Shown here: piece after piece, positions 577-23,275 of the stretch
Position numbering within the stretch: position 1 is the stretch's first letter
Layout: each line of letters opens with the position of its first letter
DNA from: Cyanophora paradoxa CCMP329
Lineage: Eukaryota > Plantae > Glaucophyta
Assembly (NCBI GenBank): GCA_004431415.1
Contig: QPMI01000478.1
Coordinates: 124,001 to 188,000, forward strand
Length of the DNA: 64,000 nucleotides
Direction: 5' to 3'
Translations under genes and position numbers: made by a program
The notes under the pieces: model-generated
Seen by the model: the letters and a program-made list of their open reading frames with translations, nothing else
Databases searched by the model: none
What the model was told of the DNA's origin: nothing

Positions 577-1189
577 TGTGCCGTCACGTCTCGCACGTCT
601 AGGGGAGAGACGTAGACCCACACCCTGTACAACAGAGTACAGACCTGCGATGCACTCGATCGTAGGCCGTATAGGCCAGCCCGAGTCCCAGGCAGCCCGT
701 AGCTATGAGACTGCAGGCCGCAGTGCTAGTATTAATTACAGCTGCTACGCAAGCCGAATCCGAAGCTCTGCCACGTGCACACTCTAATCGAATATAATCC
801 GAGCCTGACTAAGTCTGCCGAAGTCTGCCGACTCTGGCTATTTACTATTTAATAATTCACGTACGCGTACTGGGCTACATCGTCCCTTCAGGGCAAAACC
901 CTTCAGCCCTTGAGCGTCCTGCCACCTCGACGCACTCGAGCGCCAAACCCTTCAGCCCTTGAAGGCCAAACCTTTCAGCCCTTGAAGGCCGCTCGCCTGC
1001 CAGGCTGGTGGCCCAGTGGCCTCCGAGCGCCACGTCACCCTCCGAGTGCCCCGCCACCTTGGCCATTCGAGTGCTAGGCCCGGGGCCTCTCCTGGACCGG
1101 GTACGCCGGGCCGGCGGCCGGCCCCCCCTCAGGGCCCGCAGCGGGTACGCCCCCGCGTCGATCGCGAACTCGCGATCGCGCCCGCGACA
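577..1189 (-). repeat. LTR (3' LTR in element orientation), 613 bp
   Basis: TGTGCCG...CGCGACA; matches the split copy with only two substitutions found by eye. Confidence 0.93.
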
Positions 1190-4513: not shown

Positions 4514-4997
4514 TGTGCCGTCACGTCTCGCACGTCTAGGGGAGAGACGTAGACCCACACCCTGTACAACAGAGTACAGACCTTCGATGCACTCGATCGT
4601 AGGCCGTATAGGCCAGCCCGAGTCCCAGGCAGCCCGTAGCTATGAGACTGCAGACCGCAGTGCTAGTATTAATTACAGCTGCTACGCAAGCCGAATCCGA
4701 AGCTCTGCCACGTGCACACTCTAATCGAATATAATCCGAGCCTGACTAAGTCTGCCGAAGTCTGCCGACTCTGGCTATTTACTATTTAATAATTCACGTA
4801 CGCGTACTGGGCTACATCGTCCCTTCAGGGCAAAACCCTTCAGCCCTTGAGCGTCCTGCCACCTCGACGCACTCGAGCGCCAAACCCTTCAGCCCTTGAA
4901 GGCCAAACCTTTCAGCCCTTGAAGGCCGCTCGCCTGCCAGGCTGGTGGCCCAGTGGCCTCCGAGCGCCACGTCACCCTCCGAGTGCCCCGCCACCTT
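4514..4997 (-). repeat. Second LTR, left fragment
   Basis: Near-identical to 577-1060; breaks at ...CCACCTT|CACTG. Confidence 0.93.
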
Positions 4998-5035
4998 CAC
5001 TGGGGCTTAAGAAAGTCTGTTTCCCGGGGGAAACA
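4998..5035 (+). repeat. Left TIR
   Basis: CACTGGGGCTTAAGAAAGTCTGTTTCCCGGGGGAAACA. Confidence 0.92.
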
Positions 5036-5807
5036 GTCACATGTTTCCCGGCTAGCCGGGAAACATGCGCCAGTTTCCCGGGAGGTGGGAAACAGAGCTG
5101 CAACCTGGTCGTGAGGCGAGTCAGCAGCGCGGGGGCGCAGCGCTGTGCCACTGCGTACACTGACCTTAGCTACATAGCTGAGGATGGCGCCGCAAAGAGC
5201 CGATGGCCAGATTGGCCCGGTTGGCCGTTTGCTGCTGTGACCGGGTTCGTCAAGAAAACGAGCGCGCGCCACCAAAGCGCGCGGTTCAAAGTTGCTTACA
5301 GCTCATTTGGAGACGTTCTAGACTGCTAAAACGTGTGCTTTGGGGTTGGCGTGGTCCGCCGATCAAATGTTGGGCAGAGCCCGGAACGCATCGGTGGCGC
5401 GCCATTCTGCTGCAGAAGTGCTTTGATGTGATCGATAAAGCAAACTCGAGACCCGCGGCTCGCGCCGGAGAGCGATCTGTGTAACGTGCTGGTCGGGAAA
5501 CACCAGGTGGGAAACGCGGGCGAGTTGCATGGCTTGGCCAACTACGTCACCGGCGCTCGCTGGGAGTCCAGAACGACGCCTACACATCGTCTGGTGCTTA
5601 GATGCAACGCTTAGATGGTTGAATAGCGCCGCTTTTCAACCTGTCTGGCTTGACGACGTCGTGCTGTGTTTCCTATCGGGCTCCTCCCCCCCCTTTGAAG
5701 CTGTATCCCTGCTAGCCAGGAAACGTCTGCGCATGCAGCCCTGCTGAAGTTGCTGTTTCTCGTCCAGGATGCTATGTGCCTAAATGCGATGACGTTCACG
5801 TTGTGAC

Positions 5808-6659
5808 TTGAATTCGGCCATGGCTGAGGTGCGACGTACCTTGCGCACATGCATTCGTTTCTTAGGGAAACATCTCGCACCCAATTCCAAAGCACCGCTA
5901 AACAGCTCCCACGTGCAGGATGCAGATCAAAATCTGGGGAATGCAAACAAGGGCCGTTGCGGCTATCGATCTCAGCGGGCGGAGCCAAACGAGTTCGAAG
6001 GTCCGCGACACATGAACAAAACAAAGTACAACGGGGGACTCAGCAAATGTTTCTGTGCTGATTGCAAAGGCCTCGTTGTGCCGACATGGAAGCAAGACCT
6101 TCATCTTGAGCGCATCACTGGCCATGATCATACATTTACAGTGCCACCGAGCCCAATGGAGGAGATGGAGGCGGCTGAAGGGCTCTGTGCATTGAAATCG
6201 CCATCGTCCACTGCCGGCTGCCGATTGCAACAGACAATGCAATCTTCAGCTGCCGGCTGCCCAGCTATAGGACATGTACAGCCAGATCACGATCGCGAGC
6301 CATCAACTGCAACTGCTGCATGGCTGGCAGCTTGTGCACGCCTCTTTAGAGCCGCAGCAATCACAGCATTCTCATCGAGGGGTGCCGATCCCAGGACATT
6401 TATGCACTGCATCTTGTGTGGCACCACTAACCAAGGCATGTTCCCACAAGCACCGCTTGCATGGCCAGTGCATGACGAGTGTCACCGGTGCGATAATATG
6501 CAGTCACTTCATTCTAAGATCCGACTAGGGTCGAAGCCGCAGTTGGAGATTGTGCCTCCCCTGCATCAATCGCAATCCTGTGGAATAAGATCTGTTGCGA
6601 ATGCAAATATGCATGATCTGTTGCGAGCGCCGCTTGCCCACCAGCTGCAGACCCGATGA
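5808..6659 (+). other. Possible element-encoded ORF or remnant with a CxCxxC...HL motif
   Basis: KCFCADCKGLVVPTWKQDLHL resembles the Cys/His motif of the CACTA transposase-associated domain; the rest of the ORF is unrecognised. Confidence 0.3.
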
Positions 6660-6671
6660 TGCCCCATGGGA

Positions 6672-9600
6672 TAGCCGCTCGCCCCCCCGGTGCAGTACTA
6701 TAGCTAGCGATAGTGCGGCAACGCCTGATCATGATCATAAGTACTGAAAACTAGCTTCCAAGGCTCTCTGTGAGGTTGCTCGCTTTAAACGAGTACTTGC
6801 TTCGAAATGAATGATGCTACTGATCATGATCATGACCTTCGTCATGCACTCTAATCGGCCGCCTCATGATCACGACGTCGGACTGGAATCACTGAATCAA
6901 AAACGACCCACGCCGCCATCGCCAGAGCCGACCGCCCGAGATGGCGATCACTCTAGATCAGCGATGTGCGGCTCAGGCCGCAAACGAGCAGTTGCAGGAG
7001 TTGCAGCTACGATGATGCTAACCGGATTTACGAAATGGGAGAGCCGCTCGCCCCCCCGGTGCAGTACTAGCGATAGTGCGGCAATGCCTGATCATGATCA
7101 TGAGTACTCAAATCTAGCGTCCAAGGCTCTCTGCGAGGTTGCCCGCTTTAAACGAGTACTTGCTCCAAAATGAATGATGCTACTGATCATGATCATGACC
7201 TTCGTCATGCACTCTAATCGGGTGCCTCACGACGTCGGACTGGAATCACTGAATCAGAAACGGCCAGCGCCTCCAGATAAAGAGCCGACCGCCCAAGATG
7301 GCGATCACTCTAGATCAGCGATGTGCGGCTCAGGCCGCAAACGAGCAGTTGCAGGAGATGCAGCTACGATGATGCTAACCGGATTTACGAAATGGAAGAG
7401 CCGCTCGCCCTCCCGGTGCAGTACTAGCGATAGTGCGGCAACGCCTGATCATGATCATGAGTACTGAAAACTAGCTTCCAAGGCTCTCTGCGAAGTTGCC
7501 CGCTTTAAACGAGTACTTGCTTCGAAATGAATGATGCTACTGACCTTCGCCATGCATTCTGATCGGCCGCCTCCCTACTGGAATCACTGAATCAGAAACG
7601 GCCAGCGCCTCCAGATAAAGAGCCGACCGCCCAAGATGGCGATCACTCTAGATCAGCGATGTGCGGCTCAGGCCGCAAGCGAGCAGTTGCAGGAGTTGCA
7701 CTGCGGCAGCTACGATGATGCTAACCGGATTTACGAAATGGGAGAGCCGCTCGCCCCCCCGGTGCAGTACTAGCGATAGTGTGGCAACGCCTGATCATGA
7801 TCATGAGTACTCAAATCTAGCGTCCAAGGCTCGAGCTCTCTGCGAGGTTGCCCGCTTTAAACGAGTACTTGCTCCGAAATTAATGGTGCTACTGATCATG
7901 ATCATGACCTTCGTCGTGCACTCTAATCGGCCGCCTCACGACGTCGGACTGGAATCACCGAATCAATTGCAAAAACTACCCACGTGCACGCCGCCATCGC
8001 CAGAGCCGACCGCCCAAGATGGCGATCACTCTAGATCAGCGATGTGCGGCTCAGGCCGCAAACGAGCAGTTGCAGGAGTTGTAGCTACGATGATGCTAAC
8101 CGGATTTACGAAATGGGAGAGCCGCTCGCCCCCCCGGTGCAGTACTAGCGATAGTGTGGCAACGCCTGATCATGATCATGAGTACTCAAATCTAGCGTCC
8201 AAGGCTCGAGCTCTCTGCGAGGTTGCCCGCTTTAAACGAGTACTTGCTCCGAAATTAATGGTGCTACTGATCATGATCATGACCTTCGTCGTGCACTCTA
8301 ATCGGCCGCCTCACGACGTCGGACTGGAATCACCGAATCAATTGCAAAAACTACCCACGTGCACGCCGCCATCGCCAGAGCCGACCGCCCAAGATGGCGA
8401 TCACTCTAGATCAGCGATGTGCGGCTCAGGCCGCAAACGAGCAGTTGCAGGAGTTGTAGCTACGATGATGCTAACCGGATTTACGAAATGGGAGAGCCGC
8501 TCGCCCCCCCGGTGCAGTACTAGCGATAGTGCGGCAATGCCTGATCATCATCATGAGTACTCAAATCTAGCGTCCAAGGCTCTCTGCGAGGTTGCCCGCT
8601 TTAAACGAGTACTTGCTCCAAAATGAATGATGCTACTGATCATGATCATGACCTTCGTCATGCACTCTAATTGGGTGCCTCACGACGTCGGACTGGAATC
8701 ACTGAATCAAAAACGACCCACTCCGCCATCGCCAGAGCCGACCGCCCGAGATGGCGATCACTCTAGATCAGCGATGTGCGGCTCAGGCCGCAAACGAGCA
8801 GTTGCAGGAGTTGCAGCTCAGCGGCTACGATGATGCTAACTGGATTTACGAAATGGGAGAGCCGCTCGCCCCCCCGGTGCAGTACTAGCGATAGTGTGGC
8901 AACGCCTGATCATGATCATGAGTACTGAAAACTAGCTTCCAAGGCTCTCTGCGAAGTTGCCCGCTTTAAACGAGTACTTGCTTCGAAATGAATGATGCTA
9001 CTGACCTTCGCCATGCATTCTGATCGGCCGCCTCCCTACTGGAATCACTGAATCAGAAACGGCCAGCGCCTCCAGATAAAGAGCCGACCGCCCAAGATGG
9101 CGATCACTCTAGATCAGCGATGTGCGGCTCAGGCCGCAAACGAGCAGTTGCAGGAGTTGCAGCTACGATGATGCTAACCGGATTTACGAAATGGAAGAGC
9201 CGCTCGCGCTCCCGGTGCAGTACTAGCGATAGTGCGGCAACGCCTGATCATGATCATGAGTACTGAAAACTAGCTTCCAAGGCTCTCTGCGAAGTTGCCC
9301 GCTTTAAACGAGTACTTGCTTCGAAATGAATGATGCTACTGACCTTCGCCATGCATTCTGATCGGCCGCCTCCCTACTGGAATCACTGAATCAGAAACGG
9401 CCAGCGCCTCCAGATAAAGAGCCGACCGCCCAAGATGGCGATCACTCTAGATCAGCGATGTGCGGCTCAGGCCGCAAGCGAGCAGTTGCAGGAGTTGCAC
9501 TGCGGCAGCTACGATGATGCTAACCGGATTTACGAAATGGGAGAGCCGCTCGCCCCCCCGGTGCAGTACTAGCGATAGTGTGGCAATGCCTGATCATGAT

Positions 9601-10190
9601 CATGAGTACTCAAATCTAGCGTCCAAGGCTCGAGCTCTCTGCGAGGTTGCCCGCTTTAAACGAGTACTTGCTCCGAAATTAATGGTGCTACTGATCATGA
9701 TCATGACCTTCGTCGTGCACTCTAATCGGCCGCCTCACGACGTCGGACTGGAATCACCGAATCAATTGCAAAAACTACCCACGTGCACGCCGCCATCGCC
9801 AGAGCCGACCGCCCAAGATGGCGATCACTCTAGATCAGCGATGTGCGGCTCAGGCCGCAAACGAGCAGTTGCAGGAGTTGTAGCTACGATGATGCTAACC
9901 GGATTTACGAAATGGGAGAGCCGCTCGCCCCCCCGGTGCAGTACTAGCGATAGTGCGGCAATGCCTGATCATCATCATGAGTACTCAAATCTAGCGTCCA
10001 AGGCTCTCTGCGAGGTTGCCCGCTTTAAACGAGTACTTGCTCCAAAATGAATGATGCTACTGATCATGATCATGACCTTCGTCATGCAATCTAATCGGCC
10101 GCCTCACGACGTCGGACTGGAATCACTGAATCAAAAACGACCCACTCCGCCATCGCCAGAGCCGACCGCCCGAGATGGCGATCACTCTAG
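6672..10190 (-). repeat. Tandem array 1: about 10 units of about 340-380 bp
   Basis: GATCACTCTAG recurs 10 times between 6946 and 10190; several unit subtypes are present. Confidence 0.95.
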
Positions 10191-10606
10191 CGATGGCCGT
10201 TGGGCTGGAATCACTGAATCACGACACTAGCTACTAGCTAGTAATCTAGATCTATAGCTAGTGTCGACTCCCGATCCGACTTCATGATCATGATCCGACC
10301 CTGCACGAGGAGGGCGTAAAGGGCACAAAGGGAAGCTCCAACTATAGCTAGGCGTCCATCACGAATAGCGGAGCCCGTGAGGCGGCGTAATGCAATCGCC
10401 GTGATGTGCACTGCGCGACAGACACAACGGCTCGCCCAGGTGATTCCGGGGCGTGATGCTACGCGGGTAGTGGCCCATTCCAATACGTATACCTATAGAT
10501 TGCAAGCTCACCGAGCCCCGATCATGATCTGTGGCTACGCCATATGCATCATGCCAGCTCACAGCAAGACTGCTAAAGCTTGCTATAGCTGTACATGCGG
10601 TCTCAT

Positions 10607-13600
10607 CTATCTCCTCTGAAGGCCCCGTCTGCCCAGGGACTCTGCAAAATCACGATCAGATACTTCAGTTGCAGATCAATGTTGGATTGCATCTGTTGCA
10701 CACACCAATGTCGAAATCAATTGGGAATATATACCGATGAAATGTAGACTTGTCTGCAGCGGGCTGCACTGACACTCCGAGTGTTGGGACACTTGGTGGC
10801 ATAGCAAAGAGAAACCCTGCATTGCAAATGACTCAAATCTGATTGCAATTCAAAATATACAGTTGCAGTTTAACGTTGGACACGTTACCCCTTACCCGCA
10901 TGAGAAATTCTGGAAGGGAGTTCGTCTTGAATGATTTCTTGAATCTTGCCTCGAATCGTTTCTGCTCCCACCTGAAGGTCTTTAAAGAATCTGAAGTTGG
11001 CTTTTCGCATCCTGCAAACTGCGATAGATGTCAGAAAATTAAGTACGAGTGGACGCTTACAATTATAATCGCTGACGTTCATCGAGAAGCCATGAAGTTT
11101 GCAAAAGCGCGAAACGATATGGCTGAGTGGTGACAGCATCTGCGGGATTTTCAATTGCAAACCTGTACATGTATTGAGCAGCGACGTTGGGCAGCCTGTA
11201 GTACCTATATGATGCTGTGCAAAATTCCTGGCAGAGATGTTGAAAGTCCGTTCCCAGGGATCTACTTCACCAGGCATTCGTTCCACCTAATTATAAGCAT
11301 GTGCACCGATCGCAAGCTTGAGTATTCATGATCGTGCAAGCGAGATGTATATCGCAGTATCTATATAGAGTTTGCAGAGTTGCGCACGAGAATGAACGAC
11401 GGAATCAACATCTTGCCCGTAACCACGCCATGGACGTAGAATGGACCGAGGCCGCGTTTGGTTGCAGCACTCACGAATTGCTCAAAAGCGAAGAAAGACA
11501 ATCCAGTTCGACAAGCACCTACATATGCGCTAAATTAGGCAAGCCAGCTCTTTCCGTGAAAATGTTTAATGCAGATTTTAGAGCGAGCATGAACCTGTCA
11601 GTGATTCATCGAAGACAAGTGCAATGCTGAACTTCTGGCAGATTGCCGACAGCTGCACAAGAAAATCCAGCGACATGTAGCGAATTCCCTTCTCGCCATC
11701 CATTTGGATGGCCTCACAGATAATGATCTGGTTGCAATAAGTTTCGAAACAGCTTCATGCGCATGCCAACGTACTTTTATAGGCAGCTTTGAAAAAGGGT
11801 GCGACATTGTGAGCTCTTCCTTAGTGACACTTGCACTTCTTTTGATGCGTTGTTGAACGATCTATAGATAGATAGCCGGCATCAGGTGCGTGTGATCATG
11901 ATCATCTGTGCACTTGCATATGAAATTATAAGCTTAAGCTACATACCTTGCGAATGTCTTGAATGGCCTTGCGAACAGCCCCAGCATTGGCTTTAGGTGG
12001 CTGCTCACTGGGATGACGGTCGTCGTACACGCAAGGAATGACGAGATGGTCTTCCCTTTAAACAGTCCCAGTTAGCCGGTTTCACTTTGCAAATTGGCTT
12101 TAGGGGATTTAATCAAAGCCTCCACAGCTTCAGACGAACCGTCCATTGAATGCACCAGCAGGCCTGGGCTCTCGCCTGCCAACATTCGTTCCAAGCGCGC
12201 CCCTTGATGTTCCCCAGCAATCTTGTGCCCAAACGTACGCTCCCATATCGAATTCGAACTCGGGGTTTGTGCGCTTGCACATCCTTGAAATCTGATTGTA
12301 CGTTTCAATGTTTCAAGAGTAAGGTTGCTTAAAAAGAAAACAAGCGCACCAGGCAAGCAATCTCATTGATTACCGATTCTTGGTCAGAGGTGCTTCCAGT
12401 GTTTGCAAGTGTCCCAAATCCGTAGCCCTCTGCCAGCGTGCTGAGGTCATTGTCAATCTTTCTCCTTAGAGCTGTGATATCCTCTGCAAAAAAGTTATTA
12501 AAAAAGAAGCAGAGTCAACGTTAAGATTGCAGCAAATTAAATTTCGATATTGAAAATACCGTTTGAAGAATAACAAGAATGCGTGCTCGAGCTGAAGTCA
12601 ACGTTGTCGTGCACTAAAGATGGGGCAGCCATTGGATCTGATAGTACATGCCGAATGAATCTGAGGAAACATTGAATAAGATATCGCAGAAATTGATTAA
12701 TTGTATTAATATTACAGGAAAGAATAAATCAATCGCAATCACTTGGCGTTCATCTCATCAGTGTGTTCCGGTTGCGAGAGCACTGATGAGATGGATGAGC
12801 CCCACGCGCCGAAAAAATCGTGCTTGCGTGCATTGTAGATGGATCTCCACTGCCGATCGTGATTCAACCGGCCTTGAAAAATCTCCACAGCAACTTCTGG
12901 TGCAAGGCGGGACCAAGGGGAGCTGGAGCTCCTGTCCCGCATCTTGGATTCAGAGCTGGCCATGGGACTTGAGCTCCGTTCAGATACTCGAAGGAGTGCT
13001 AGAAGCTCGGTGATGTTGCTGCCTGAAAACGAACCACATGCACTGATATCGATATGCGAGCCGTAAATGTAATTATAAGATGCAAATATGCTGCGTCATA
13101 CACATAGCGTGGACTCACCGAAAAACTTTCAATGCTTCTTGAGGACTATAAAGTTCACTGAAGCCGAGAAGCACAATATAAGCCAGGGCGATGGGGTCCG
13201 TCAAATAGTTTGCCAGAATTGTCTTCATCACCCTGTAAATGTCAACGAGAACAAATTAAGAAAGGAGAAAATAGGGACGGAATTGAAAATCAATATTAAC
13301 ACTGACTGCATGGTAGCTTTCAAGATGCCTGTTGTTGCAGACAAAGATTCCAGATCCGATCGCAATTTTCGAAGCAGCTCTAATTCCGGATCGATTCGTT
13401 GCTGTGATCGTCCTGCCATGCATGTGAGCCTTAATTATATAATTAGATCAATTCAAACGGCTGTGCACCTTGATCATCAGCATTATCCAACATGTACATG
13501 TGCTCATGATCAGCACCTCCAGCTGCACACGATCGCGATCCAGCCGGCACATTCACCTCCAAGTTGCCTGTATGTATATATGTGCCATTTGCATTGCTTT

Positions 13601-13843
13601 GTAAGCAGGCTGCAACGCATCCCTGATTTGATGGCACACGCACGCTTTTTGGAAGCAGATACATGTGCCGCGGCCGGCTGGGATGCGTCGACGTCGACCT
13701 CTCGATTCTCAAGGGCGGTAGTGGCTACAGCCCCAAGCAGCTCTAGGCCTCCGACATGTGATTGCTCTAGATCTGTGTTCAGTGCTCATGATCAGTGGCT
13801 GATGTAGGGCGAGCACGTAATTATAACGACCGCGCTGCACCAT
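10607..13843 (-). CDS. Divergent class-III (PLP-dependent) aminotransferase-like protein, multi-exon, with N-terminal extension
   Basis: Manually spliced exons give, in the expected order: TLANTGSTSDQES (~NSGSEA); WGTSRGALG (~YHGRTLGAL); IIICEAIQ...FLVQLSAICQKFSIALVFDESLTGACRTGLSFFAFEQF (11727-11595, 11518-11388); VVTGKML (PLP lysine); HRYIFPID (~RFxPPL). Intron phases were consistent where checked. The terminal exons are less certain. Confidence 0.8.
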
Positions 13844-15103
13844 TGCTCGGCGAATTTGAATTCGAAATCGAAAAGGAACTTTGCACATGACGTCGACTGG
13901 AGGATTCGAATTCGGCCGCAGCCGCCTCCGCAGCCACCTTCCTCTTGGCGGCTTCAACTGCACGCACAGACAGATTACTCACAATGGAATGGACTCTTTG
14001 GGCTTTATATAGCGCAGCGGCTGCCTGGCGGCCGGCTAGCTGCAAAGGCCGCTGTGCATGGCCAGATCACTAGAGAGAAGCCTCCGCAAGCACAGCCGCC
14101 CTCGTCTTGGCGGCTGCACGCACAGTGACGATCTTTAAGATATATAGCTTAGCATGCTTAGCTTTTCATGATCAAGAGGCCGCCCGGTCGCTGGCTTAAA
14201 AAGCTTGCCAGGTCGCTGGCTACAGGGAGAGGCGGTTGCGGACCCCGAAGACTTCCGCTCGACAAGCTCATGCGCAAACGACACGCATACGAACCTGCTT
14301 CGCTTTCAAAGCCGTCTGGTCTCGCGGGAGTCTTGCCTCTTGCTGCCAACGATGCTGCGACACCTTTTTCGCTCTGCTTCGCCCGAAGCGCTGACTTCAC
14401 GCCACCACCTCGCTTTTTGGGGTCCTTCTTCAGATTGAACGTGACGTGCAGCTGGAGCGCCGCGCGCTCGCCAGGCATTGTGCTCGCCGTGCACTCGCTG
14501 CAGCTGGGGGGTACTGTCTTCGCAATCTCTCAAAAGCACTTCTCCTCGTAAATTGAACGAGCGATTCTCCTCGAGCTCTAGATATATAGATCGATATCTC
14601 TGCGCCTTTAGATCTCCGGATCCTCTAGCGAGCTTCACTCGAGCGCCAGCTGCAGAGCTCGAGACGTCGACGGACTTCCCCCCCCCCACCTTCGGAGACT
14701 GTACCCCCTATATTTTGCGAACGGCCTTCCTCGTTTGAAAAGCGAGCAGCTCTGCGCACCGAGCAGCTCAGCGACTGCTGCCGAATGCAGATCATGGAAG
14801 ATCGGAACGCAAGTCATTTGCGTGCGAGACCCTGAGGTGAAGTCAGGTTTGTGCGGTCATTTGCGGTCCAGGTGCGCTCCTTCTCATCACAGCTGTGCGC
14901 TTGCGATAGGCGGTTTCCTTAGTTGCGCAAACACGAAAGCAATTGGTTCGCAGCCGCTCATCCCCCCCACCCTCGGCCGTTGGCTGCAGCTGGCCATGGC
15001 CGTGGAATGGATCGATGGCGTCGCGCGCGCCGGCAAGCGCGACCTTCATTGAAGGTGCGCATTCCCTTGGCTGCAACTTATCATCATTTCCCGCCTGCTC
15101 ATA

Positions 15104-18100
15104 GCCGCGCCTCGCAGAGTGATCGCGATCGCTTTCTCGGGGGGCTGCAGCTGGCTCTGGCGGGCTGTTTCTGAACCGAGTGCTGGGGCGTCGCTCCGGC
15201 CGATCCGAGTGCATGGCGAAGGTCCGTTCCATCATTCATTTCGATATTTGTGCTCGTCTCAATCGTGCGACCTCGCAGGCATCTTGGGAGCTTCGAATTC
15301 GCTTTCGGCACTCTCGGCTTGGCCGCGCCGCACTGGTGGGCGGGCGGCGCTCTCGCTTCGTAATAAAGGTGAGTATCGCTGCTGCTGCAACTTCTAATCG
15401 TTTCGGGCCTGACCCGCGCCTCGCAGAGTGATCGCTTTCTCGGGGGATGGCTCTGGCGGTCTGTTTCTGACCCGAGTGCTGGGGCGTCGCTCCGGCCGAT
15501 CCGAGCGCATGGCGAAGGTCAGTTCCATCATTCATTTCGATATTTGCACTCGTCTCAATCGTGCGACCTCGCAGGCATCTTGGGAGCTTCGCTTTCGGCA
15601 CTCTCGGCGTGGCCGCGCCGCACCTGGTGGGCGGGCGGCGCTCTCGCTTCGTAATAAAGGTGAGTATCACTGCTGCTGCAACTTCTAATCGTTTCGGGCC
15701 TGACCCGCGCCTCGCAGAGTGATCGCTTTCTCGGGGGCATGGCTCTGGCGGGCTGTTTCTGACCCGAGTGCTGGGGCGTCGCTCCGGCCGCTCGGGGGGC
15801 TGCAGCTGGCTCTGGCGGGCTGTTTCTGAACCGAGTGCTGGGGCGTCGCTCCGGCCGATCCGAGTGCATGGCGAAGGTCCGTTCCATCATTCATTTCGAT
15901 ATTTGTGCTCGTCTCAATCGTGCGACCTCGCAGGCATCTTGGGAGCTTCGAATTCGCTTTCGGCACTCTCGGCGTGGCCGCGCCGCACCTGGTGGGCGGG
16001 CGGCGCTCTCGCTTCGTAATAAAGGTGAGTATCACTGCTGCTGCAACTTCTAATCGTTTCGGGCCTGACCCGCGCCTCGCAGAGTGATCGCTTTCTCGGG
16101 GGCATGGCTCTGGCGGGCTGTTTCTGACCCGAGTGCTGGGGCGTCGCTCCGGCCGCTCGGGGGCTGCAGCTGGCTCTGGCGGGCTGTTTCTGAACCGAGT
16201 GCTGGGGCGTCGCTCCGGCCGATCCGAGTGCATGGCGAAGGTCCGTTCCATCATTCATTTCGATATTTGTGCTCGTCTCAATCGTGCGACCTCGCAGGCA
16301 TCTTGGGAGCTTCGAATTCGCTTTCGGCACTCTCGGCTTGGCCGCGCCGCACCTGGTGGGCGGGCGGCGCTCTCGCTTCGTAATAAAGGTGAGTATCGCT
16401 GCTGCTGCAACTTCTAATCGTTTCGGGCCTGACCCGCGCCTCGCAGAGTGATCGCTTTCTCGGGGGATGGCTCTGGCGGGCTGTTTCTGACCCGAGTGCT
16501 GGGGCGTCGCTCCGGCCGATCCGAGCGCATGGCGAAGGTCAGTTCCATCATTCATTTCGATATTTGCACTCGTCTCAATCGTGCGACCTCGCAGGCATCT
16601 TGGGAGCTTCGCTTTCGGCACTCTCGGCGTGGCCGCGCCGCACCTGGTGGGCGGGCGGCGCTCTCGCTTCGTAATAAAGGTGAGTATCACTGCTGCTGCA
16701 ACTTCTAATCGTTTCGGGCCTGACCCGCGCCTCGCAGAGTGATCGCTTTCTCGGGGCATGGCTCTGGCGGGCTGTTTCTGACCCGAGTGCTGGGGCGTCG
16801 CTCCGGCCGATCCGAGCGCATGGCGAAGGTCAGTTCCATCATTCATTTCGATATTTGCACTCGTCTCAATCGTGCGACCTCGCAGGCATCTTGGAGCTTC
16901 GCTTTCGGCACTCTCGGCGTGGCCGCGCCGCACCTGGTGGGCGGGCGGCGCTCTCGCTTCGTAATAAAGGTGAGTATCGCTGCTGCTGCAACTTCTAATC
17001 GTTTCGGGCCTGACCCGCGCCTCGCAGAGTGATCGCTTTCTCGGGGCATGGCTCTGGCGGGCTGTTTCTGACCCGAGTGCTGGGGCGTCGCTCCGGCCGC
17101 TCGGGGGCTGCAGCTGGCTCTGGCGGGCTGTTTCTGAACCGAGTGCTGGGGCGTCGCTCCGGCCGATCCGAGTGCATGGCGAAGGTCCGTTCCATCATTC
17201 ATTTCGATATTTGTGCTCGTCTCAATCGTGCGACCTCGCAGGCATCTTGGGAGCTTCGAATTCGCTTTCGGCACTCTCGGCTTGGCCGCGCCGCACCTGG
17301 TGGGCGGGCGGCGCTCTCGCTTCGTAATAAAGGTGAGTATCGCTGCTGCTGCAACTTCTAATCGTTTCGGGCCTGACCCGCGCCTCGCAGAGTGATCGCT
17401 TTCTCGGGGGATGGCTCTGGCGGTCTGTTTCTGACCCGAGTGCTGGGGCGTCGCTCCGGCCGATCCGAGCGCATGGCGAAGGTCAGTTCCATCATTCATT
17501 TCGATATTTGCACTCGTCTCAATCGTGCGACCTCGCAGGCATCTTGGGAGCTTCGCTTTCGGCACTCTCGGCGTGGCCGCGCCGCACCTGGTGGGCGGGC
17601 GGCGCTCTCGCTTCGTAATAAAGGTGAGTATCACTGCTGCTGCAACTTCTAATCGTTTCGGGCCTGACCCGCGCCTCGCAGAGTGATCGCTTTCTCGGGG
17701 GCATGGCTCTGGCGGGCTGTTTCTGACCCGAGTGCTGGGGCGTCGCTCCGGCCGCTCGGGGGGCTGCAGCTGGCTCTGGCGGGCTGTTTCTGAACCGAGT
17801 GCTGGGCGTCGCTCCGGCCGATCCGAGTGCATGGCGAAGGTCCGTTCCATCATTCATTTCGATATTTGTGCTCGTCTCAATCGTGCGACCTCGCAGGCAT
17901 CTTGGGAGCTTCGAATTCGCTTTCGGCACTCTCGGCGTGGCCGCGCCGCACCTGGTGGGCGGGCGGCGCTCTCGCTTCGTAATAAAGGTGAGTATCACTG
18001 CTGCTGCAACTTCTAATCGTTTCGGGCCTGACCCGCGCCTCGCAGAGTGATCGCTTTCTCGGGGGCATGGCTCTGGCGGGCTGTTTCTGACCCGAGTGCT

Positions 18101-21100
18101 GGGGCGTCGCTCCGGCCGCTCGGGGGGCTGCAGCTGGCTCTGGCGGGCTGTTTCTGAACCGAGTGCTGGGGCGTCGCTCCGGCCGATCCGAGTGCATGGC
18201 GAAGGTCCGTTCCATCATTCATTTCGATATTTGTGCTCGTCTCAATCGTGCGACCTCGCAGGCATCTTGGGAGCTTCGAATTCGCTTTCGGCACTCTCGG
18301 CTTGGCCGCGCCGCACCTGGTGGGCGGGCGGCGCTCTCGCTTCGTAATAAAGGTGAGTATCGCTGCTGCTGCAACTTCTAATCGTTTCGGGCCTGACCCG
18401 CGCCTCGCAGAGTGATCGCTTTCTCGGGGATGGCTCTGGCGGGCTGTTTCTGACCCGAGTGCTGGGGCGTCGCTCCGGCCGATCCGAGCGCATGGCGAAG
18501 GTCAGTTCCATCATTCATTTCGATATTTGCACTCGTCTCAATCGTGCGACCTCGCAGGCATCTTGGGAGCTTCGCTTTCGGCACTCTCGGCGTGGCCGCG
18601 CCGCACCTGGTGGGCGGGCGGCGCTCTCGCTTCGTAATAAAGGTGAGTATCACTGCTGCTGCAACTTCTAATCGTTTCGGGCCTGACCCGCGCCTCGCAG
18701 AGTGATCGCTTTCTCGGGGGCATGGCTCTGGCGGGCTGTTTCTGACCCGAGTGCTGGGGCGTCGCTCCGGCCGATCCGAGCGCATGGCGAAGGTCCGTTC
18801 CATCATTCATTTCGATATTTGCACTCGTCTCAATCGTGCGACCTCGCAGGCATCTTGGGAGCTTCGCTTTCGGCACTCTCGGCGTGGCCGCGCCGCACCT
18901 GGTGGGCGGGCGGCGCTCTCGCTTCGTAATAAAGGTGAGTATCGCTGCTGCTGCAACTTCTAATCGTTTCGGGCCTGACCCGCGCCTCGCAGAGTGATCG
19001 CTTTCTCGGGGGCATGGCTCTGGCGGGCTGTTTCTGACCCGAGTGCTGGGGCGTCGCTCCGGCCGCTCGGGGGGCTGCAGCTGGCTCTGGCGGGCTGTTT
19101 CTGAACCGAGTGCTGGGGCGTCGCTCCGGCCGATCCGAGTGCATGGCGAAGGTCCGTTCCATCATTCATTTCGATATTTGTGCTCGTCTCAATCGTGCGA
19201 CCTCGCAGGCATCTTGGGAGCTTCGAATTCGCTTTCGGCACTCTCGGCTTGGCCGCGCCGCACCTGGTGGGCGGGCGGCGCTCTCGCTTCGTAATAAAGG
19301 TGAGTATCGCTGCTGCTGCAACTTCTAATCGTTTCGGGCCTGACCCGCGCCTCGCAGAGTGATCGCTTTCTCGGGGGATGGCTCTGGCGGGCTGTTTCTG
19401 ACCCGAGTGCTGGGGCGTCGCTCCGGCCGATCCGAGCGCATGGCGAAGGTCAGTTCCATCATTCATTTCGATATTTGCACTCGTCTCAATCGTGCGACCT
19501 CGCAGGCATCTTGGGAGCTTCGCTTTCGGCACTCTCGGCGTGGCCGCGCCGCACCTGGTGGGCGGGCGGCGCTCTCGCTTCGTAATAAAGGTGAGTATCA
19601 CTGCTGCTGCAACTTCTAATCGTTTCGGGCCTGACCCGCGCCTCGCAGAGTGATCGCTTTCTCGGGGGCATGGCTCTGGCGGGCTGTTTCTGACCCGAGT
19701 GCTGGGGCGTCGCTCCGGCCGCTCGGGGGGCTGCAGCTGGCTCTGGCGGGCTGTTTCTGAACCGAGTGCTGGGGCGTCGCTCCGGCCGATCCGAGTGCAT
19801 GGCGAAGGTCCGTTCCATCATTCATTTCGATATTTGTGCTCGTCTCAATCGTACGCGTGCGACCTCGCAGGCATCTTGGGAGCTTCGAATTCGCTTTCGG
19901 CACTCTCGGCTTGGCCGCGCCGCACCTGGTGGGCGGGCGGCGCTCTCGCTTCGTAATAAAGGTGAGTATCGCTGCTGCTGCAACTTCTAATCGTTTCGGA
20001 CCTGACCCGCGCCTCGCAGAGTGATCGCTTTCTCGGGGGATGGCTCTGGCGGGCTGTTTCTGACCCGAGTGCTGGGGCGTCGCTCCGGCCGATCCGAGCG
20101 CATGGCGAAGGTCAGTTCCATCATTCATTTCGATATTTGTGCTCGTCTCAATCGTACGCGTGCGACCTCGCAGGCATCTTGGGAGCTTCGAATTCGCTTT
20201 CGGCACTCTCGGCTTGGCCGCGCCGCACCTGGTGGGCGGGCGGCGCTCTCGCTTCGTAATAAAGGTGAGTATCGCTGCTGCTGCAACTTCTAATCGTTTC
20301 GGACCTGACCCGCGCCTCGCAGAGTGATCGCTTTCTCGGGGGATGGCTCTGGCGGGCTGTTTCTGACCCGAGTGCTGGGGCGTCGCTCCGGCCGATCCGA
20401 GCGCATGGCGAAGGTCAGTTCCATCATTCATTTCGATATTTGCACTCGTCTCAATCGTGCGACCTCGCAGGCATCTTGGGAGCTTCGCTTTCGGCACTCT
20501 CGGCGTGGCCGCGCCGCACCTGGTGGGCGGGCGGCGCTCTCGCTTCGTAATAAAGGTGAGTATCACTGCTGCTGCAACTTCTAATCGTTTCGGGCCTGAC
20601 CCGCGCCTCGCAGAGTGATCGCTTTCTCGGGGCATGGCTCTGGCGGGCTGTTTCTGACCCGAGTGCTGGGGCGTCGCTCCGGCCGATCCGAGCGCATGGC
20701 GAAGGTCCGTTCCATCATTCATTTCGATATTTGCACTCGTCTCAATCGTGCGACCTCGCAGGCATCTTGGGAGCTTCGCTTTCGGCACTCTCGGCGTGGC
20801 CGCGCCGCACCTGGTGGGCGGGCGGCGCTCTCGCTTCGTAATAAAGGTGAGTATCGCTGCTGCTGCAACTTCTAATCGTTTCGGGCCTGACCCGCGCCTC
20901 GCAGAGTGATCGCTTTCTCGGGGGGATGGCTCTGGCGGGCTGTTTCTGACCCGAGTGCTGGGGCGTCGCTCCGGCCGATCCGAGCGCATGGCGAAGGTCA
21001 GTTGCATCATTCATGTCGATATTTGCACTCGTCTCAATCGTGCGACCTCGCAGGCATCTTGGGAGCTTCGCTTTCGGCACTCTCGGTGTGGCCGCGCCGC

Positions 21101-21349
21101 ACCTGGTGGGCGGGCGGCGCTCTCGCTTCGTAATAAAGGTGAGTATCGCTGCTGCTGCAACTTCTAATCGTTTCGGGCCTGACCCGCGCCTCGCAGAGTG
21201 ATCGCTTTCTCGGGGGGATGGCTCTGGCGGGCTGTTTCTGACCCGAGTGCTGGGGCGTCGCTCCGGCCGATCCGAGCGCATGGCGAAGGTCAGTTCCATC
21301 ATTCATTTCGATATTTGCACTCGTCTCAATCGTGCGACCTCTCAGGCAT
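15104..21349 (+). repeat. Tandem array 2: about 20 units of about 291 bp (short) or about 365 bp (long)
   Basis: GTAATAAAGGTGAGT recurs 19 times; long units carry an internal duplication of about 67 bp and a GAATTC insertion. Confidence 0.95.
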
Positions 21350-23105
21350 CAGGTGCCGCAGCTGGAGGGCAGGCGCGCGGCGCTCGTACTTCGTAAATTA
21401 AAGAAGGCGAGTATCTCCGTAGCACTATCAATATAGCTAACAAAGATGACTATTGGTTAAAGCGCTATCTGTAGTGTACATGTATTAATTTTAGCGATAG
21501 GCGAGCACTACCAGCGATTTTAATGCGTTAGTACTAGCTATATAGTGTATTAATCATGGTTCACCGATCGATATCGCGAGTCACGGTTTCTTTAATTTTT
21601 GCAAAAGCGGACGTCGCATTGATACACCACGGCACATGTATCAATGTTCTACGTGACGTGCCCTTCCGATCGCGACCGGTCATCGATATCTATCTAGCCG
21701 GCCATGGGTCACCGAGTCACGGTTTCAGACGTCAACGTGTCACGTTTTCAGACGTCAATGTTGAATTCTTAAAGATAATGCCAGGATCTAGACTCGTTGA
21801 GTTCTATAGCCCCGCAGCCCCTCATGATCAACGACTGCTAATAGGCTTCATCTTTGCATGTCCCCTGGTCTGCGCAGATCAAGCCTAGATCGTGGCTGTA
21901 TCCGTAGCACTCTAGATCTTTATAAACCGTTGAACTGACTTGCAAATACGCTCGCAGTGCTTTTCTCCGGGCGGCGCCTCAACTGAACGGTCCTAGGCCT
22001 CGGACAAGGTGATTCATTCATGATTTGCAGCTGCACTAGCTATACCTATAGTACTAGATCTAGATTTGCAGCTGTACTATCATAGTACGGATCTGGCGTT
22101 ATATAATTAGATGAAATAGGCAATCTCTATTTTGAAATTCGAATTCAACCGCCGATCGAGAATCGAGATCCGTTGGTAACATTTGCATTCTATCGTTGCT
22201 ATATGTATCAATATTAATGCTATCATTCTAGATACAGATTAGAGAGCCGGCGCAAGCGCTAGCTATATATATGCAGATCTACCTCCTGCTGCAGTCCACT
22301 GATGATACGGCTTCCTTTTCCACAGGTCAGCTCTACATCCGCTCTGTATGTGTTCAGGTCCGAGTGCGAGCTCGCTCTAGATCTGCAATATACGTTTATA
22401 TATATACATGATTATTAAAACTGATTGCGGTATGGCTTTGTACGAATGTATACACGCAGTTTTCTTCTACTGGCCTGGCCTCCGCCAGCTGCAGCCGCCC
22501 GGTCAATATCATGATCATGAGGTGCTTTGAACTTGCAATTGCTATCATAGCAAGCTGCACTAGTAATATAGCTAATTATTGCTCGCATGCGCAGCGTTGG
22601 CATGCGTATGGCACGCGGTCATGAGTCATGATCATGATCCGCTGCAGCTGCAGCTGCAGCTGCGCGCAGCAAGCTTAAGTACTGAGTAGGAGATCTAGAG
22701 CAGCGCTATATATATAGCTAGCTATATACATTGCTCGCCTTGCAGCGTTAGCACAGCACGCGTACGATGCAGCCCAGCAAGCAGAAGATCATCGCGATCG
22801 GATCCCGGCCTAGCTAGCTCGGATCTTAGCTAGCTAGCTCGCTAGGATCTTAGCTAGCTATAGCTCGCTAGGATCTTAGCTAGCTCGTTAGCTTGAGTTG
22901 TACATGTGTATAAAGAGTACAGCGTTAACGTTGCGCATGTTTGGCGATGTAAAAACCAGCTAGCTAGATGGGTCGGGTAATGGGCAAACGAAAAAAAAGT
23001 TACCCGGTGGGAAACTCAGCGATGTTTCCCACCTGACGTTTCCCACCTGATGGTCCCCATGGGGGTCCTCCGCCCCGGTGTGTTACCTATAGGGTAACAT
23101 GCATG

Positions 23106-23143
23106 TGTTTCCCCCGGGAAACATACTTTCTTAGGCACCAGTG
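23106..23143 (-). repeat. Right TIR
   Basis: Reverse complement is CACTGGTGCCTAAGAAAGTATGTTTCCCGGGGGAAACA. Confidence 0.92.
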
Positions 23144-23275
23144 CTTGGCCATTCGAGTGCTAGGCCCGGGGCCTCTCCTGGACCGGGTACGCCGGGCCGG
23201 CGGCCGGCCCCCCCTCAGGGCCCGCAGCGGGTACGCCCCCGCGTCGATCGCGAACTCGCGATCGCGCCCGCGACA
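23144..23275 (-). repeat. Second LTR, right fragment (including the duplicated CTT)
   Basis: Matches 1058-1189 and is followed by GTAT. Confidence 0.93.

Follow-up and report, generated by a model that had tools for sequence, protein, structure and literature searches.

Two inverted tandem arrays of common descent, separately homogenised inside a probable CACTA-type transposon of Cyanophora paradoxa

Analysis of the window (the whole 64-kb stretch of DNA under study) revealed two tandem arrays in opposite orientation, both lying within one insertion of 18,146 bp (4998-23143). Comparison of their repeats confirmed, at the level of sequence similarity, that a single repeat unit, roughly 300-360 bp long, was ancestral to both arrays, while the units of each array have been homogenised separately. 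The insertion itself is most likely a non-autonomous CACTA-type cut-and-paste transposon, of which the arrays would be internal satellite DNA. The arrays are interpreted as an unusual version of a known transposon habit, and a new function for them is not supported.

Layout, common descent and homogenisation of the arrays

The arrays, the domain between them and the adjoining features are as follows.

5808-6659, plus strand: left-arm open reading frame, 283 codons long, stopping 7 bp before array 1
6617-6665, plus strand: partial unit bordering array 1 on its outer side, degenerate and with an internal deletion, nearer the array-2 state
6666-10195, plus strand: array 1, GC 54%, made up of about 9.8 units that fall into three subtypes and measure 338-375 bp, with the unit phase running from 1 to 289
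10196-15024, minus strand: middle domain, GC 50%, with an intron-bearing gene at roughly 10.6-13.9 kb on the minus strand
10222-10266, no strand assigned: perfect palindrome with 12-nt arms at the inner boundary of array 1
15025-21424, minus strand: array 2, GC 62%, comprising 19 full units (290-303 bp) and seven partial inserts of 66-67 bp

TRF placed array 1 at 6666-10190 (period 375, 9.8 copies) and array 2 at 15448-21350 (periods 291/364); profile searches widened the limits of the latter to about 15025-21424, with a unit phase running from about 322-328 (at 21424) to 357+17 (at 15025). These searches, together with the consensus alignment, bore out the positions and the inverted orientation given in the first-pass annotation. 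The consensus of array 1 (357 bp) and the reverse complement of that of array 2 (291 bp) were identical in 228 of 276 aligned columns (83%), and the similarity is colinear around the whole unit, as had been claimed. The alignment score of 114 is far above chance, since 500 dinucleotide shuffles gave 3.6 +/- 2.3 with a maximum of 19 (z = 47). When all rotations were considered, the best score was 116 in inverted and 8 in same-strand orientation, indicating that the homology exists in inverted orientation only. A hidden Markov model (HMM) of array 1 matched every unit of array 2 over profile positions 5-357 (E about 1e-25). All these matches were on the minus strand, and the 64-kb window contained none outside the arrays.

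Between array-1 and array-2 units there are 27 indels, 7 of them with gaps in multiples of three, and the longest exact word common to both arrays is 17 nt. The core of 47-48 bp quoted in the first-pass annotation was found in all array-2 units in inverted orientation at 87.5-89.6% identity; the array-1 unit quoted there belongs to the subtype nearest array 2. Conservation of a 48-bp core slightly exceeds that of the remaining unit (permutation p = 0.023), which allows some constraint on its sequence; no occurrence of the conserved core pattern was found in metagenome and viral contig collections. Decay of one array driven by methylation was rejected, given observed/expected CpG ratios of 1.09 and 1.18 in the arrays. 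The palindrome at 10222-10266 was considered as a repeated binding site and rejected, other close copies not being found.

The first-pass annotation described the units as near-identical within an array, which holds for array 2 (96-100% identity) but not for array 1, where three subtypes of unequal length share 89-100%; it was right that the arrays have diverged from each other, identity between them being 83%. In a unit tree the array-1 and array-2 units are reciprocally monophyletic, each array forming its own cluster without exception. At 48 diagnostic sites, interior units show 0-1 states of the foreign array, and the edge units are mixed (4/20 and 3/4). The partial unit at 6617-6665 is identical to the array-2 consensus at 21 of 24 positions (phase 5-28) and has the array-2 state at three of four diagnostic sites. 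Each array also contains its own duplicated block: in array 2 a higher-order block of 1.96 kb (15152-17114) is 99.5% identical to 17115-19081, and in array 1 a 1-kb block (7392-8409) is 97% identical to 9191-10190. Higher identity within than between arrays, less homogenised edges and higher-order blocks are all features of a satellite under concerted evolution. Shared ancestry followed by separate homogenisation of each array is thus supported by the tree, the diagnostic sites and the recent duplications.

The element carrying the arrays

The limits of the insertion could be defined by its terminal features and by an uninterrupted copy of its target.

577-1189, plus strand: empty paralogous target site, an uninterrupted copy of the 613-bp repeat hit by the insertion, with CTT once (1058-1060)
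4995-4997, no strand assigned: left target-site duplication, CTT, 3 bp, read directly
4998-5049, plus strand: left terminal inverted repeat (TIR), starting with CACTG, 52 bp, 84.6% complementary to 23143-23092
5019-5871, no strand assigned: left GGGAAAC cluster, with nine copies of this short subterminal motif in both orientations
21425-23091, no strand assigned: right arm, GC 47%, without homology to the left arm, holding the right GGGAAAC cluster
23092-23143, minus strand: right terminal inverted repeat, ending with CAGTG
23144-23146, no strand assigned: right target-site duplication, CTT, 3 bp, read directly

Segment 577-1060 is 99.6% identical to 4514-4997, and 1058-1189 is 100% identical to 23144-23275, the two alignments overlapping by 3 bp. 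The host repeats flanking the element differ at 2 of 616 sites, and therefore the insertion is much more recent than the separation of the arrays. The CACTG...CAGTG termini, which fit the superfamily pattern CACT(A/G)...(C/T)AGTG, the 3-bp duplication and the short direct and inverted subterminal repeats are those of CACTA (En/Spm) transposons; a 19-nt terminal pattern occurs at both element ends only. The motif GGGAAAC is found 17 times in the window against 7.4 expected, with 14 of the 17 copies within 870 bp of the element ends, including five in the right cluster (23009-23122), and none inside either array. The first-pass annotation was correct in stating that known CACTA subterminal repeats are short, and the element carries such motifs as well. 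Since ordinary short subterminal motifs are present at both ends, the large arrays are best regarded as additional internal satellites.

The arrays begin 1,668 and 1,719 bp from the element tips, and their outer flanks have only the 52-bp TIR and short motifs in common. As in foldback-like elements, both arms contain inverted tandem repeats in variable copy number (about 10 versus 19 full units), but long homologous TIRs making up most of each arm are absent. No Pfam transposase family was detected in the non-array parts, where 25 of the uninterrupted open reading frames of at least 70 aa and shorter minus-strand pieces of the cargo gene were scanned. CACTA elements are moved by a Transposase_21/DDE transposase, which acts in trans on non-autonomous copies. 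The frame at 5808-6659 has no Pfam family and no Atlas match, and word searches with it and a cargo frame gave no match in a collection that is devoid of proteins from this genome, the queries included. The cargo gene was compared exon by exon: the exon at 11578-11703 matched Aminotran_3 at E 4.6e-5, which is below the curated cut-off, and PDB aminotransferases at E 0.03-0.5, and as a predicted product it resembles class-III aminotransferases.

Two DNA runs each gave segment 10161-14906 as a single short-read contig, identical in both, and this stretch of the genome is present in 20 runs of re-sequenced samples. Among the short-read contigs the junction between cargo and array 2 also occurs in a second version, which points to one or more additional diverged copies in the genome. 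A flip-flop of the middle domain by inversion was considered and rejected, as no contig links the arrays to the opposite cargo ends, although rare forms could escape contigs.

Origin and possible role of the inverted pair

The most probable history, to which a probability of about 0.6 is assigned, is that one pre-existing array was split by an inversion, after which the two parts were homogenised separately and remained passive within a CACTA-type element. A single tandem array would already have resided in the element before the inversion, one breakpoint of which would have cut the array while the second lay past the cargo segment. The cargo would have been reversed together with the distal portion of the array, producing two arrays facing each other, between which exchange would no longer be possible; each half would then have been homogenised alone by unequal exchange and block duplication. 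Separate homogenisation of this kind would explain why units resemble one another inside an array yet differ by about 17%, and by many indels, from those of the other array. The arrays would be passive passengers of the element, the GGGAAAC motifs and TIRs at its tips being the likely sites for a transposase, which would have to come from an autonomous relative. The homology, its inverted orientation, the clustering of units, the limits of the element, the recent block duplications and the complementary phases were demonstrated; that an inversion took place, that the arrays are passive and which sites a transposase uses are inferences.

The unit phases at the array ends bear on the choice between one array and two. 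Array 1 (1 to 289) and array 2 (about 322-328 to 357+17) are near-integral together and non-integral each alone, and the probability of such a double phase coincidence by chance is estimated at about 0.02-0.03. Complementary phases fit the splitting of a single array better than two seeded units. The presumed breakpoint lacks about 32-38 bp of the unit and contains a rearranged 17-nt unit fragment, so that the phase fit is approximate and could be a coincidence. The first-pass annotation had proposed that one ancestral unit was placed on both sides of the cargo gene and amplified independently. Such a history, in which an inverted single unit near each end of the ancestral element could have belonged to a long subterminal inverted repeat or have been copied by gap repair after excision, appears doubtful. 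The inverted arrays mirror the TIR symmetry of the element at similar distances from its tips, and in Galileo an internal sequence was recruited into the opposite arm (PMC3573991); however, the arms outside and inside the arrays lack homology beyond the 52-bp TIR and short motifs even though the units are 83% alike, and the phases of each array are non-integral by themselves but near-integral when the two are combined. Seeding on both sides is thus not the simplest history. An old long inverted duplication of the whole arms was rejected on the same ground, the flanks having no homology beyond the TIR.

The suggestion that the arrangement hints at a function found no positive evidence in the spacing of indels, the length of shared words, the Rfam search or the RNA contigs. 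It is unlikely that the arrays are functional cis elements retained through some benefit to the element or its cargo, for which they could serve as extra landing sites for a transposase or accessory protein (compare TnpA sites, or THAP sites in Galileo repeats), as chromatin boundaries or as silencing platforms around the cargo gene. Slightly above-average conservation of the 48-bp core, recent transposition of an 18-kb element despite 10 kb of satellite, the second variant of the cargo/array-2 junction in the genome and the proposal of Galileo TIR tandem repeats as secondary transposase sites (PMC3573991) would agree with such a role. On the other hand, the GGGAAAC clusters are at the tips rather than within the arrays, unit length and number vary freely between the arrays, the units are separated by 27 indels, and no RNA contigs cover array stretches 9501-10195 and 15025-15500 in two runs presumed to be RNA. 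A stronger form, quite improbable on these data, is that the paired arrays are a maintained part of the family, with the core recruiting a family-specific protein or setting a chromatin state and so promoting mobilisation of a large element or controlling the caged cargo gene. If this were true, CACTA-type elements would have, in such 300-bp repeat arrays, a cis-acting module of a new class.

Expression of the repeats, either as tandem exons, separated by introns or not, of a gene for a repetitive protein or as a small-RNA hairpin formed by the inverted arrays, is highly improbable. Frames of 464 codons (array 2, minus strand) and 321 codons (array 1, plus strand) are open in the same unit orientation, and the array-2 unit contains an intron-like GTGAGT ... 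CTGAC ... CAG on the plus strand. Nevertheless, a 97-codon unit of 62% GC is estimated to have one open frame among the six in about 30% of cases, and the array-2 GTGAGT aligns to GTTAGC in array 1. Coding repeats were rejected because the gaps are mostly not in threes and the frame is broken in other array-1 units. Pfam matches of the array frames (VWA_2, Inovirus capsid) contained no single significant stretch and were rejected as artefacts of repetition; for the 463-aa array frame no record was found. The search for known RNA genes yielded no Rfam family and no tRNA, and such genes were therefore rejected for the arrays. A hairpin source of small RNA was rejected as unlikely, the longest common exact word of 17 nt being too short for a good Dicer substrate. 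In the two runs presumed to be RNA no contig was found anywhere on 9501-15500. Passive carriage of a split array remains the preferred reading.

Comparison with known systems

The locus provides a clean, datable case of a satellite array evolving in concert: two halves of one origin lie 5 kb apart on one molecule, cut off from each other by orientation and 17% apart, with blocks inside the halves copied at up to 99.5% identity. A CACTA-type element can evidently transpose with more than half its length made up of satellite DNA, which bears on the seeding and spread of satellites by transposons. Should both arrays recur with unchanged phases in other copies of the family, the rate of homogenisation could be measured against that of transposition. 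As it stands, the locus is not evidence of a new mechanism, and transposon-borne arrays with independent dynamics on two arms have already been described (PMC3573991, PMC4079207, PMC8978399).

Classical En/Spm-type subterminal repeats are short motifs, direct and inverted, within a few hundred bp of the ends (PMC8978399), and the GGGAAAC clusters are similar to these. The Cyanophora arrays of 291-357-bp units are, in contrast, a separate internal feature 1.7 kb from the tips and do not contain the short motif. The CACTA-like Jozin of Chenopodium quinoa, of about 16.5 kb, resembles the Cyanophora element in its internal satellite array of 5.5 kb (32.5 units of 171 bp), captured and present in several family copies (PMC8978399). 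Unlike the element described here, it contains only one array, which invariably lies towards the 3' end, and still possesses a transposase; a second inverted array and a cargo gene between arrays are lacking (PMC8978399).

Galileo of Drosophila, a member of the P superfamily, has in subfamily F tandem repeats of about 210 bp inside inverted arms, with copy number unequal between the arms of one copy, termed 'independent TIR dynamism', and its repeats were discussed by the authors as secondary transposase-binding sites (PMC3573991). It differs in having two or three repeats per arm (10-20 here), arms that are 95% identical, a different superfamily and a transposase in autonomous copies (PMC3573991).

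Tetris of Drosophila virilis is likewise a non-autonomous DNA transposon, composed of a flanking domain, tandem repeats of about 220 bp in variable number and a middle domain; its arm arrays are in inverted orientation and are a source of satellite DNA (PMC4079207). In Tetris, however, the whole arms are mutually homologous long TIRs of up to 1.7 kb and the middle domain has no coding capacity (PMC4079207), whereas in the Cyanophora element only the arrays and the 52-bp TIR are common to the arms, the ends are of CACTA type with a 3-bp duplication, the middle contains a gene, and the arrays extend over 3.5 and 6.4 kb and are 17% diverged.

The transposon and its cargo

Both arrays lie within a single transposon of 18,146 bp, whose insertion is recorded in the self-comparison of the window. 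The segment 577-1060 recurs at 4514-4997 (99.6% identity) and 1058-1189 recurs at 23144-23275 (100%), and where the repeat is uninterrupted the two matches have the trinucleotide CTT in common. At the interrupted copy CTT flanks the insert on each side; the insert starts with CACTG at 4998, ends with CAGTG at 23143 and is bounded by a 52-bp terminal inverted repeat (TIR, 85%). The first 19 nt of the element ends do not occur elsewhere in the window. The heptamer GGGAAAC is found 17 times in the window against 7.4 expected, and 14 of these copies are within 870 bp of the element ends, in both orientations. These termini, the 3-bp duplication and the short subterminal repeats identify a CACTA/En-Spm-type element. 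Since it is the short GGGAAAC repeats that mark its ends, the large arrays are a separate internal feature, distinct from the subterminal repeats. The parts of the element are as follows.

4998-23143, CACTA-type transposon
5808-6659 (+), 283-codon open frame
6617-6665, degenerate partial unit directly outside array 1
6666-10195 (+), array 1
10196-15024 (-), middle domain with the cargo gene
10222-10266, palindrome at the inner end of array 1
15025-21424 (-), array 2

No transposase family was matched by the non-array open reading frames scanned (25 of those of at least 70 aa, plus shorter minus-strand pieces of the cargo), so that this copy, judged by its uninterrupted frames, is non-autonomous. 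The 283-codon frame contains several Cys/His clusters, stops 7 bp before array 1 and exceeds the length expected to be open by chance at its GC content; it has no Pfam family, word-search relative or Atlas look-alike. The element inserted into one of two directly repeated copies of a 613-bp sequence, which lie about 3.9 kb apart and are 99.7% identical (577-1189, and 4514-4997 plus 23144-23275, the latter split by the 18-kb element). Long open reading frames without a Pfam family are found in the 3.3 kb that separates the copies, and the copies may be paired repeats of an unidentified retroelement.

The 4.8-kb middle domain has a lower GC content than the arrays and carries an intron-bearing gene on the minus strand. 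When this gene was searched by single exons, by reference, only one exon resembled class-III aminotransferases, and weakly: its Pfam match (E 4.6e-5) falls short of the curated threshold, and its PDB matches have E of 0.03 at best. The window was also compared with short-read contigs from two independent DNA runs; the depth figures of the tool are not copy numbers. The cargo region 10161-14906 was recovered as a single contig that agrees with the window at every base but for an additional C in the C-homopolymer at 14677, where the assembly is probably in error. At the junction of cargo and array 2 a second version was seen (14877-15126, 93-95% identical), and contigs of array-1 type were abundant, with bases matching no unit of the window (e.g. 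18 differences in 160 bp). Together these point to at least one additional diverged, array-bearing copy in the genome. At 11441-11602 one contig in each DNA run matches both sides and not the intervening 162 bp, and several other cargo segments also bear short extra contigs; the pattern suggests that the cargo gene has a second, diverged copy in which the exons are conserved and the introns differ.

Homology and separate homogenisation of the arrays

Tandem Repeats Finder reported array 1 at 6666-10190 with a period of 375, 9.8 copies and 88% matches, and array 2 as overlapping rows over 15448-21350 with periods of 291 and 364 and 95-97% matches. Delimited by anchor motifs, array 1 consists of ten units of 338-375 bp, and array 2 of 19 full units of 290-303 bp with seven interspersed partial duplications of 66-67 bp. 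The arrays begin 1,668 bp (left) and 1,719 bp (right) from the tips of the element. The first-pass annotation described the units as near-identical within each array, which holds for array 2 (96-100% identity between units), but not for array 1, in which three subtypes occur together, 89-100% alike and set apart by indels, one of them a palindromic insertion of 12 bp; the unit quoted in that annotation belongs to the subtype closest to array 2. The window contains 19 copies of the palindromic motif CATGATCATG, of which 17 are within the element (6124-22628); 14 lie in array 1, two per long unit, and none in array 2. One copy per long unit is the 12-bp insertion, which the short subtype lacks.

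With an array-1 unit as BLAST query, every array-2 unit was matched on the opposite strand through the 48-bp core quoted in the first-pass annotation, at 87.5-89.6% identity. A majority consensus was derived for each array (357 bp for array 1, and 291 bp for array 2 after reverse complementation), and the two were rotated to a common phase and aligned globally, giving 228 identical columns out of 276 (83%), colinear around the entire unit. The score of 114 lies far above that of 500 dinucleotide-preserving shuffles (3.6 +/- 2.3, maximum 19; z = 47), and across all rotations the best inverted score was 116, against 8 on the same strand. A profile HMM of array 1 found every array-2 unit over profile positions 5-357 with E of about 1e-25, always on the minus strand, while neither array's profile found units outside the two arrays within the 64 kb. 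The arrays are thus inverted homologues around the whole unit and share a common origin, as had been proposed from inspection.

The proposal that each array was homogenised separately was likewise confirmed. A tree built from all units separates the arrays into two reciprocally monophyletic groups, and at the 48 diagnostic sites that distinguish the consensus units, a unit in the interior has no more than one (0-1) of the other array's states. Such states are found at 4 of 20 sites at the cargo-proximal edge of array 2, at 3 of 48 in the first array-1 unit and at 3 of 4 in the degenerate partial unit. Older states kept at the edges of a swept interior are the textbook sign of concerted evolution by unequal exchange. 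Each array has its own recent block duplication: in array 2, 15152-17114 matches 17115-19081 (1,969 bp, 99.5% identity), and in array 1, 7392-8409 matches 9191-10190 (97%). Between the empty paralogue and the sequence flanking the insertion, only 2 of 616 positions differ, against a 17% split between the arrays, so on a common clock the insertion is much younger than the split, and the arrays were already differentiated when the element moved. In composition, 16 of the 20 transition differences between the consensus units have G or C on the array-2 side and A or T on the array-1 side; GC content is 62% in array 2 versus 54% in array 1, AT skew in array 2 is -0.33, and neither array is depleted in CpG.

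Origin of the inverted pair and the search for a function

Numbered on the array-1 consensus (1-357), array 1 runs from phase 1 (6666) to phase 289 (10195) and is followed by a rearranged 17-nt unit fragment and a perfect palindrome. The latter (12-nt arms, 21-nt spacer) stands exactly at the inner end of array 1, beside the displaced fragment, and may be the scar left where a rearrangement terminated the array. In unit orientation, array 2 runs from phase 322-328 or so (21424) to 357, with about 17 further, degenerate bases (15025). An array that arises by tandem duplication is expected to contain a whole number of units; neither array is integral alone, and the two combined nearly are. Except for 32-38 missing bp, array 2 starts at the phase where array 1 stops, and its end meets the start of array 1; by our own estimate, the chance of both phase pairs agreeing so well is about 0.02-0.03.

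The first-pass annotation supposed that one unit was placed at each end of the element and amplified there independently. The phases, complementary between the arrays, speak against this history, as do the arms outside and inside the arrays, in which no homology was found except the TIR. A long inverted duplication placing one unit at each end would be odd if the arms share nothing more while the units are still 83% alike. We therefore prefer a history, read from the sequence of one copy, in which a single array would have been cut by an inversion with one breakpoint inside the array and the other past the cargo segment, a small deletion at the breakpoint being assumed.

The suggestion that the paired arrays hint at a function found no support, as signs of coding, RNA, splicing, transcription, hairpins and transposase sites were all looked for and none was positive. 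Open frames of 464 and 321 codons run through the arrays, as expected by chance in GC-rich repeats with a length that is a multiple of three; their Pfam hits include no single significant stretch, and of the 27 gaps in the alignment between the arrays only 7 are multiples of three. No known RNAs were found in the arrays. Each array-2 unit contains on the plus strand (e.g. 15360-15420) an intron-like stretch of about 58 nt with GTGAGT, CTGAC and CAG, and its GTGAGT donor aligns with GTTAGC in array 1. In runs only guessed to be RNA, no contig covered this stretch or 9501-15500, which is no proof of silence. There is no sign of a hairpin of double-stranded RNA or DNA between the arrays, their longest exact common word being 17 nt, and the GGGAAAC motif of the tips is absent from them. 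The 48-bp core, conserved above a random arrangement of the same matches (p = 0.023), is the one hint of constraint, and a weak one.

Comparison with other array-bearing transposons

That transposons can carry satellites is well established. In several copies of the Jozin CACTA-like elements of Chenopodium quinoa, units of 171 bp form an array of 5.5 kb close to the 3' end (PMC8978399). In Tetris of Drosophila virilis the middle is non-coding and lies between two inverted arms, each made up of a flanking domain, ~220-bp repeats in an array, and an inner domain (PMC4079207). The TIRs of Galileo subfamily F contain repeats of ~210 bp whose number differs between the two arms, and the authors of that study discuss a role for such repeats as secondary transposase sites (PMC3573991). 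Unlike in these elements, homology here is confined to the arrays and does not extend to the arms, the arrays are much longer, have diverged strongly from one another and enclose a gene. The inverted pair of arrays recalls foldback elements, but the long homologous arms that define these are lacking, and the element should therefore be filed as CACTA-type with a foldback-like internal architecture. It combines CACTA-type ends with a foldback-like inverted array pair.
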